A stretch of DNA of 63,645 nt, counting the filler, from Olpidium bornovanus S191 (lineage: Eukaryota; Fungi; Olpidiomycota): NCBI GenBank assembly GCA_017911155.1. It is 29 parts of 29 records of this genome, joined end to end, with 100 filler letters (N's around TTAATTAATTAA, not from the genome) between each part and the next. Parts side by side here need not be neighbours in the genome. Positions count along the whole stretch, not along the records: positions 10,865 to 12,137 come from JAEFCI010010788.1; 28 more parts are not named here. The stretch is one strand, 5' to 3'. This document shows, piece after piece, positions 10,865 through 12,237 of the stretch (position 1 is its first letter; each line of letters begins with the position of its first letter). The notes beneath the pieces were generated by a model. That model searched no databases, was not told the DNA's origin, and was given only the letters and a program-made list of their open reading frames with translations. Position numbers and translations under genes: made by a program.

Positions 10865-11465
10865 AAAGCCCGGTCGTCATCATCGCCCGCGGAAGGCTCA
10901 GAGCGCAGGCCCGGCGCCAATTGGGTATACACGCCTTTGGCAGTCATAGAAGACCACAAGCGTCGAAGGATCGAATGAGCCATGGTGAGCCGCCCCTCCG
11001 TGCCTTTGGAATGCTCCAACACGGCTCTCCCGTGGACAGCGGCGTTGGCAAACCACCACAGGAGGCTATTCTCCATGGGCTAGAAAACATCGTACTCTGG
11101 GAGTACGAGTTCCCCTCCCGAGACCGGCCCGCTGCACTCCATGCAGAAGCCCAAGACCAAGTGATGCGCTGCCTTGTCGATGTACGTCCGAGACTATGAC
11201 AAACGGAATAGATAGACCCAGAATTAGCCATAGATAGAATGCATGACGAGGCTCTGATGCCGAATAACAGCTACGTCGACGTCCGTACAGAGCACTCGAC
11301 TCGAGCCCCAGCCAAGAAGGATCACCAAGACCGTAGAACCAAGATCTACCTCACCTGGTAGTTGTACGTGATCCACATCGAAGGAGGCGTGTCGGGAAAC
11401 TTCTCATAGAAGAACGCCAACTCCTCCGATAACGTCGACTCGTAGGCCTTGACGTACGACAAGAA
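10865..11465 (-). pseudogene. TET/JBP-like 2OG-Fe(II) dioxygenase, decayed, intron-containing
   Basis: Removing intron 11194-11354 (GTGAGG donor, CTAAT branch, TAG acceptor, phase 0) gives PSMWITYNYQ/SRTYIDKAAHHLVLGFCMECSGPVSGGELVLPEYDVF*PMENSLLWWFANAAVHGRAVLEHSKGTEGRLTMAHSILRRLW. This has the HxD...GGxLxLP...HG...R layout, with H>Y and an in-frame TAG at 11080-11082. Confidence 0.68.
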
Positions 11466-12002
11466 CTTGCGCACGAGGCGAGAGGAAGCCGAGCAATTAG
11501 CACGGGCCACCAACCCGTCAGGCTCGCGGCAAAATTGGGGTTTTGCCAAGAATGCGTGCAACTAACCGGCCCCGGACATCCAGCTGCCAGGCACGGATTC
11601 CCTGGCTTTGCCACGATGCAGCGGGAATGGCGTGTGGACAAGAGCGCGGCTGCGCTGATACCAGCGATTAGCCACGGCAGGCGACGCGAAGTTACGGGAC
11701 CAGCCACCAATCAGCTCTCAGGTCTCGTCATCATACAGCCAGCTTTCCCTCACCCGGCCGCCAGCATTCAAGTTCGGCAAGAATGATAAGCGTGGTGTCT
11801 AGCCGTGCCAGGGGCTCCCCCTTTTTTCTTTAGAGGCCTAGAAAAGGGCCGAGACTTCTCTCGCCCGGGAAGAATTTCGTCCGCGGGCGTGGGGGGGAGA
11901 CGGGGTGGGGTGTCATCGCGGGGCGCCACACTGCCCCGCCGCGTCGAAACGAGAGGAGCAGAGATGAGAAACCCCACCCCCCCTCAAAAACCCCGGGGCG
12001 GG

Positions 12003-12066
<64 letters not shown>

Positions 12067-12237
12067 AGGGGGGGGGGGGGGCCCACCCCCCCCCCCCCCC
12101 CCCCCCCCCCCCCGCGCCCCCCCCGCCCCCCCCCCCCNNNNNNNNNNNNNNNNNNNNNNNNNNNNNNNNNNNNNNNNNNNNTTAATTAATTAANNNNNNN
12201 NNNNNNNNNNNNNNNNNNNNNNNNNNNNNNNNNNNNN

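Follow-up and report, generated by a model that had tools for sequence, protein, structure and literature searches.

A decayed TET-like dioxygenase gene in an Olpidium bornovanus assembly and its likely origin as an antisense passenger of Ty3/gypsy chromoviruses

TET enzymes encoded by transposons are presumed to enable mobile elements to remove the methylation marks of their hosts. Fungal expansions of the TET/JBP family are carried by KDZ, hAT, Harbinger, IS3EU, EnSpm, ESTA, Plavaka and Helitron DNA transposons (Kojima, 2025, PMC12730594), in three Dikarya lineages, the Pucciniomycetes, Agaricomycetes and Pezizomycetes, with types designated PU, AG and PE. The same survey refers to earlier reports linking TET genes with DNA transposons in Basidiomycota, remarks on the absence of a retrotransposon carrier, for which a copy-number argument is offered, and describes PE-type proteins so divergent that CMD1, the TET homologue of Chlamydomonas reinhardtii, is their best HHpred match (PMC12730594). 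The iron ligands of CMD1 are His345, Asp347 and His397, and its H345A and D347N variants are catalytically dead (PDB 7cy4-7cy8). Retrotransposons have captured other proteins of epigenetic regulation, including DNA methyltransferases (DNMTs) in dinoflagellates and charophytes (PMC5890265), a methyl-CpG-binding domain (MBD) in arthropod Copia elements (PMC6673714), an AlkB-type demethylase of N6-methyladenosine (m6A) in orchid Ty3/gypsy elements (PMC9289625), and adenine methyltransferases in chromovirus-like long terminal repeat (LTR) elements (bioRxiv 10.64898/2026.05.21.726589). This report concerns a TET-like gene remnant in a 63,645-nucleotide stretch of DNA (the window), assembled from 29 parts of 29 records of Olpidium bornovanus S191 (GCA_017911155.1), and the gene family to which the remnant belongs. 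The genomic part considered is positions 10865-12137 (JAEFCI010010788.1), which bears the gene on its minus strand.

The sequence from 11780 down to 10865 is read as a decayed copy of a TET-like (CMD1-like) gene that is carried antisense by a retrotransposon, a joint statement with an estimated probability of about 0.62. Related loci, not the window, suggest that functional copies of the gene reside in LTR retrotransposons of the Ty3/gypsy chromovirus type, flanked on one side by the integrase-chromodomain end of pol and on the other by the polypurine tract (PPT) and 3' LTR, and encoded on the strand opposite to gag-pol. The antisense intron would remain in the genomic RNA of the element and survive reverse transcription, and a spliceosomal intron could persist in a retroelement in this way because, in antisense orientation, it is no intron on the genomic RNA. 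The enzyme would be made from a separate antisense transcript and would oxidize a methylated base, 5-methylcytosine (5mC) or possibly N6-methyladenine (6mA), on the DNA of the element, countering methylation-based silencing as has been proposed for the TET genes of fungal DNA transposons. The copy in the window would be a decayed insertion.

The gene is recognizable in the window despite its decay. Minus-strand frame 0 runs from about 11780 down to ...MWITYNYQ, ending at 11355, and is followed by an intron in which a branch-like CTAAT motif lies ~33 nt ahead of the AG; the exon 2 frame then reads SRTYIDKAAHHLVLGFCMECSGPVSGGELVLPEYDVF, a stop and PMENSLLWWFANAAVHGRAVLEHSKGTEGRLTMAHS... as far as the edge of the piece. 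When spliced, the peptide is ...MWITYNYQ/SRTYIDKAAHH...GGELVLPEYDVF-stop-PMENSLLWWFANAAVHG...GRLTMAHS, with the slash at the exon junction. Database searches with this peptide found relatives at E=8e-48 to 1e-46 (P0001, P0002), and the DNA matched three metagenome contigs at 77-81% identity with the intron included; a chance reading is discounted because of these two results. It is therefore very improbable that the spliced reading is an artefact or that its defects are sequencing errors in a poor assembly, even though the long homopolymers at the end of the piece are typical of low-quality sequence, since the copy carries five independent lesions and a raised rate of nonsynonymous change (dN), not one or two doubtful bases, and since other copies (L001, L004, P0014, L009; related loci carry L numbers and related proteins P numbers) are also degraded, each differently.

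A preliminary description of this DNA had proposed a hidden gene split by an intron at 11194-11354, with TAC at the HxD histidine and a TAG codon further on, and these elements are in the sequence where it placed them, on the minus strand; its view that the histidine was lost by a single C>T change is borne out by the relatives. Other parts of that description require revision. The TAG had been derived from CAG by C>T, a derivation at odds with the tryptophan codon of all relatives, and the gene continues upstream of the part described, to about 11780, through two more stops and a deletion that had been missed. Where two defects and a recent silencing had been proposed, the copy contains three stops, a 24-bp deletion, a truncated 5' end and 62 private substitutions. 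In view of this heavy damage and of a synonymous divergence of ~0.5 from the nearest copy found, with ~20% DNA divergence relative to the closest copies, recent silencing is not supported, but the source genome may harbour a closer sibling. The dN of the window copy is two to three times that among intact copies. It is a near certainty that the feature is a genuine but thoroughly dead pseudogene, and by analogy with CMD1 H345A the His-to-Tyr change alone would abolish iron binding.

The private substitutions include 39 GC>AT and 10 AT>GC transitions, and changes affect 11.8% of G/C sites and 4.4% of A/T sites, a general GC>AT bias. The C>T and G>A changes have no preference for CpG or CpA contexts (CpG 12/90, non-CpG 21/172; Fisher p=0.85), and nothing therefore indicates repeat-induced point mutation (RIP) or 5mC deamination. 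Hypermutation of the window copy by either process was rejected on this lack of dinucleotide preference.

The window copy is one member of a rare family with very few public sequences, of which a single-sequence search identified three proteins and an alignment search ten. A profile search of 1.84 billion (1.84e9) representatives, which worked effectively on the exon-1 half as few rows spanned exon 2, returned 16 family representatives with E<=0.001 and, for that half, no link to annotated TETs. No relatives were present in metagenome_contigs (two scans; JGI) or in genome_contigs (prokaryotic) and viral_contigs (one scan each). O. bornovanus is a cucurbit root parasite, which fits the cucumber-root component of one source of family members, the wheat/cucumber root and soil metagenome PRJNA208116; others came from a JGI metagenome and several Logan assemblies. 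Three contigs of the O. bornovanus assembly itself carry members (P0008, P0024, P0015), so the origin in a zoosporic fungus that the preliminary description assumed is plausible, and the intact members that it expected elsewhere exist and include copies that keep HxD.

Intact copies are represented by L002, L003 and L007 and by two divergent lineages, L006 and the Olpidium locus L008, which share 59-64% identity in exon 2; all of them retain H-x-D, GG-x-F-V-x-P, H-G and the R of RLTMA. Ratios of nonsynonymous to synonymous divergence (dN/dS) among L001, L002, L003 and L007 are 0.03-0.07 at dS 0.9-1.5; L006 was excluded, since a one-codon indel shifted its alignment out of register. The intact relatives are under strong purifying selection, and the protein probably is, or recently was, functional in the elements that carry intact copies. 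The dead copies differ in their defects: L004 has a stop, P0014 a deletion across HxD, and L009 an interruption, while L001, whose exon 2 lies at a contig end, is otherwise open but has Asp (GAC) where the distal iron ligand His is expected and, in GRLTMA, Tyr instead of Leu. It is predicted to be a second catalytic knockout, independent of the first and free of stop codons.

Some further features of individual copies were observed. The interrupted exon-1 fragment of L009 (Olpidium JAEFCI010004531.1) is followed by Pro/Ala/Arg-rich tandem repeats (...PPSAACRAASAAFGRLPRRFRRLRPPAAP...), which also occur in the 873-aa protein P0021 and were noted with P0021/P0015. A copia-type pol tail (...ADGFTKGL...) lies just upstream of the same fragment and thus marks nested transposable element (TE) debris. 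At positions 437-445, L007 reads I-PGALEVLL where its relatives start MPGALEVLL...; the ATG may have been lost (ATG>ATA), or the start may lie in an upstream exon.

The intron is conserved in position and variable in content. In all six copies for which DNA is available (window, L001, L002, L007, L006, L008), the donor immediately follows the ...NYQ codon and the acceptor immediately precedes (P/S)R(M/T)(H/Y)xD. Intron lengths are 161, 185, 174, 151 and 146 nt in five copies and, by eye, ~83 nt in L008; length modulo 3 varies among copies, and each intron contains in-frame stops. The GC content of the introns is 0.37-0.52, versus ~0.59 in exons, and a CTAAY branch-like motif was located by eye upstream of the AG. 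Prokaryote-style open reading frame (ORF) calls in databases all stop 1-10 residues past NYQ/NYM, even in members only 30-47% identical. The interruption is predicted to be a genuine spliceosomal intron.

Similarity to TET enzymes was detected through CMD1. Three family profiles (A1, A3 and A8) were compared with 177,635 PDB sequences, and CMD1 was the sole match at E<=10 for each (E=2.3e-4, 9.9e-5 and 1.8e-4, respectively); the single window peptide reached CMD1 at E=0.023. The HxD...H residues of the family fall on residues 719/721/771 of the CMD1 chain, which correspond to His345/Asp347/His397 after a 374-residue tag offset. This triad is kept in L002, L003, L006, L007 and L008 and broken in the window copy, at the first His, and in L001, at the distal His. 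The arginine of GRLTMAHS is invariant in all seven exon-2 sequences. The top two Pfam matches of the Olpidium paralogue, both sub-threshold, are Tet_JBP (PF12851; E=0.11, with 12.1 bits where the cut-off is 34.9) and the Tet-like 2OG-FeII_Oxy_6 (PF20515; E=0.27). The window peptide and the spliced relatives had a single Pfam match, to AtuA at E ~0.02-0.07, which was taken as noise.

Because CMD1 is the sole PDB match, the iron ligands are in register and GGEFVLP is shared, there is a strong likelihood that the family represents a distant TET/JBP-like Fe(II) dioxygenase. The TET/JBP-like character proposed in the preliminary description thus stands as a distant likeness, and the Pfam check that it proposed yields no match above the curated thresholds. 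The alternative that these proteins are dioxygenases of another class dependent on 2-oxoglutarate (2OG) and Fe(II), such as an AlkB-like demethylase or a protein hydroxylase, draws on this lack of a curated match, on the occurrence of HxD...H...R throughout the superfamily, and on the AlkB-type domain known in orchid Ty3/gypsy elements (PMC9289625). It is unlikely, given that the three profiles match CMD1 and no AlkB, prolyl hydroxylase or other double-stranded beta-helix (DSBH) chain at E<=10, that GGEFVLP and a His-His spacing of 50-52 residues agree with CMD1, that the sub-threshold Pfam matches are to two TET families, and that the distant PE-type fungal TETs of Kojima likewise match CMD1 best.

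The neighbours of the gene identify its probable carrier. In L007 the stop codons of the gene (...1715) and of a convergent 351-aa ORF are immediately adjacent, and this ORF contains rve (6.8e-8), SH3_Tf2-1 (3.9e-12) and Chromo (1.5e-15) domains. A convergent Chromo ORF (3.7e-17) overlaps the end of the gene by 11 bp in L002, and in L008, a much more divergent Olpidium paralogue, the overlap is 36 bp with an ORF containing SH3_Tf2-1 (1.1e-10) and Chromo (1.8e-13). This tail-to-tail junction is thus present in three of the three loci that reach past the stop codon, and L002, L003 and L007, at 79-82% DNA identity, are collinear straight across it. No LTR separates integrase and gene in L002, L007 or L008, and the gene therefore probably occupies the internal region of the element instead of lying beside an insertion. 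Pfam scans of flanking ORFs in L001, L002, L004, L005, L007 and L008 returned retroelement domains or nothing; no KDZ transposase, CxC domain or other transposase was present in these short flanks, and the KDZ transposon context suggested in the preliminary description gives way to Ty3/gypsy integrase-chromodomain and gag ORFs. Carriage of the family by retrotransposons is considered likely.

These junctions bear on a further alternative, in which an ordinary, non-mobile host multigene family of TET-like genes resides in TE-rich heterochromatin and the window copy is a plain duplicate pseudogene. Such a family would account for the short contigs without a complete element and for the copia pol tail beside the L009 fragment, and nested TEs are common around these genes. 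The recurrence of the same LTR-free tail-to-tail junction in L002, L007 and L008, down to ~55-64% protein identity, and the DNA collinearity of L003 across it nevertheless weaken this explanation, because independent insertions would not reproduce the same junction, and the copies are numerous and mostly degraded, like those of a TE family. A non-mobile host family is accordingly regarded as improbable.

The other end of the putative element is visible in L005. On the sense strand of the element, the order in this locus is gene start, 625 bp of non-coding sequence, a PPT-like tract, an LTR-like stretch, a primer-binding-site (PBS)-like sequence and gag (Table 1). The PBS-like TGGTAGCAAAGG is presumably complementary to the ...UGCUACCA end of initiator tRNA-Met. 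A walk from pol through the gene to PPT, LTR, PBS and gag is expected from tandem elements or from assembler collapse of two LTRs, and the sister contig L006 breaks 117 nt into the LTR-like stretch. The L005 order also argues against a DNA element with a gypsy-like integrase, of the Ginger or Polinton/Maverick type, as the carrier of the TET-like gene. That possibility arises from the presence beside the gene of integrase core, SH3 and chromodomain with no reverse transcriptase (RT) or RNase H on the same contig; it is rendered quite doubtful by the Ty3_capsid/Retrotrans_gag ORF, by the PBS-like TGGTAGCA after ...ACA and the PPT-like tract before TGT... 490 bp off, and by SH3_Tf2-1, a Tf2/Ty3-type integrase module.

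Two features of the non-coding region were recorded. A conserved near-palindrome, AGTCGGGGGCCCTCCGACT, is situated upstream of the TET-like start in L001 (~320-345), L007 (~204-228) and L010 (~265-290), in an otherwise fast-evolving region bounded by the start of the gene and the putative PPT; it may serve as a promoter or regulatory hairpin or belong to the 3' untranslated region of the retroelement. In addition, L005 contains a 20-nt inverted repeat at 1419-1495 (ACTTTCGAACGTCGAACTTG and CAACCTCGAAGTTCGAAAGT, 85% complementary and 37 nt apart); the repeat ends in the PPT-like tract, at the margin of the internal region that faces the LTR-like stretch.

Table 1. Positions of features in the window gene and in the related locus L005.
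Feature	Sequence	Position	Strand	Remarks
Non-homologous GC-rich sequence outside gene	Window	11781..12137	.	Marks 5' truncation point; no match to upstream regions of any relative
5' truncation	Window	~11780	minus	~110 further N-terminal codons in relatives (as in P0003)
Exon 1 remnant, 5'-truncated	Window	11355..11780	minus	DNA homology to L001 over 11780 to 10960; translation LPNLNAGGRVRESWLYDDET-stop-ELIGG...MWITYNYQ, aligns with P0003-P0008
Stop TGA	Window	11718..11720	minus	GGA (Gly) in L001; G>T transversion
24-bp in-frame deletion	Window	near 11571/11570 (site 11562..11571)	minus	Relatives read LTVARSTG
Stop TAG, directly after deletion	Window	11562..11564	minus	Relatives GAA or GAG (Glu); G>T transversion
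Spliceosomal intron (predicted), 161 nt, phase 0	Window	11194..11354	minus	GTGAGG...CATAG; same donor/acceptor position in all copies
Exon 2, catalytic core HxD...GGExVLP...H...R	Window	10865..11193	minus	Piece edge ~15 codons short of stop
Y-I-D at HxD iron-binding motif	Window	11176..11184	minus	TAC (Tyr, 11184-11182) for CAT/CAC; Asp (11178-11176) retained
His to Tyr, TAC	Window	11182..11184	minus	Relatives CAT or CAC; single C>T
GGELVLP motif	Window	11098..11118	minus	Aligned to CMD1 GGEFVLP
Stop TAG	Window	11080..11082	minus	TGG (Trp) in all three relatives; G>A on coding strand
Distal iron-binding His (CAC), intact	Window	11032..11034	minus	Aligned to CMD1 His397
Invariant Arg (CGG) of GRLTMAHS	Window	10990..10992	minus	Candidate co-substrate-binding Arg; 14 residues past distal His
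PPT-like tract, purine-rich	L005	1424-1411		GAAAGTGGGGAGGG, then TGT...; by inspection
LTR-like stretch, 490 bp	L005	1410-921		TGT...ACA with TATATAAA inside; by inspection
PBS-like site	L005	920-909		TGGTAGCAAAGG (TGGTAGCA), right after ...ACA end; by inspection
gag ORF	L005	3-797	minus	Ty3_capsid 5.3e-13, Retrotrans_gag 1.6e-11

Upstream of the gene remnant, comparison of 11781-12000 with the loci of all relatives yielded 13-nt matches at chance level only, and Rfam and tRNA scans of the window piece gave no matches. The end of the piece, positions 12001-12137, comprises A(60) and then homopolymer runs of G and C, and a similar poly-A/poly-C block occurs at positions 41-100 of the Olpidium contig L004; such blocks may have arisen in assembly or sequencing, or may be a true low-complexity repeat of the genome.

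Several observations weigh against a retrotransposon-borne TET-like gene. The contigs, all 2.9 kb or shorter, contain no RT/RNase H, no second LTR copy and no complete element, and direct LTR repeats are absent within each of them; the LTR, PBS and PPT of L005 are by-inspection calls from a single copy. The window piece ends ~15 codons before the junction. The source assembly was binned from a metagenome and consists of 13,695 short contigs, and the Olpidium label of the family is for that reason probable, not certain. With respect to the enzyme, Tet_JBP (PF12851), the check proposed in the preliminary description, was matched by neither the window copy nor the proteins of L001, L002 and L007, and no family member scanned reached the threshold of this model or of 2OG-FeII_Oxy_6. 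AlphaFold2 models from 9- and 19-row alignments were of low confidence (mean pLDDT 38.7 and 48.7), and Foldseek found nothing in the PDB with E<2, CcTet appearing among non-significant rows only; because of these low-confidence models and the lack of a significant Foldseek match, a DSBH fold is only putative for the family.

The window copy is no more than a dead relic, valuable for the family that it reveals. The odds lean slightly toward this family providing the first TET/JBP-type dioxygenase on an LTR retrotransposon, as an antisense, intron-bearing, anti-silencing (demethylating) module of an Olpidiomycota chromovirus. If so, transposon-encoded TETs would extend beyond DNA transposons and beyond Dikarya, and a chromovirus that combines a heterochromatin-reading chromodomain with a TET-like oxidase would be a counter-example to the stated absence of retrotransposon carriers. 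Such a chromovirus would, moreover, supply the 'eraser' so far missing from the captures of DNMTs, MBD and adenine methyltransferases by retroelements. Olpidium is the zoosporic lineage closest to terrestrial fungi, and the finding points to base-modification biology in this genus. The very divergent CMD1-like branch is missed by current Pfam models and is therefore likely to be under-annotated elsewhere.

Comparison with the known systems brings out what is shared and what differs. CMD1 has HxD, GGEFVLP verbatim and the distal HG in register with the family, with a His-His spacing of 52 residues compared with 50; however, the similarity is limited to ~100 residues and ends before the invariant Arg of the family, and CMD1 employs vitamin C, not 2OG, as its co-substrate. 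No retroelement context for CMD1 was found in the portions of the literature available. The TETs of fungal DNA transposons resemble the family in being multi-copy and linked to mobile elements, in having numerous dead copies and in their presumed function against silencing, but their carriers are all DNA transposons, whereas the family lies beside a Ty3/gypsy integrase-chromodomain and gag, in an Olpidium-like lineage, as an antisense gene with an intron. Retrotransposons with captured epigenetic enzymes likewise place an accessory nucleic-acid-modification enzyme by the 3' end of pol, in some cases with a chromodomain. In the example with a described layout, the additional domain is joined to pol in the sense orientation, while the family is represented by a separate, convergent, intron-containing gene for a TET-like oxidase. 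An antisense, intron-bearing TET-like gene in an Olpidium-like chromovirus would thus be a new variation on the theme of the TE-encoded epigenetic enzyme.

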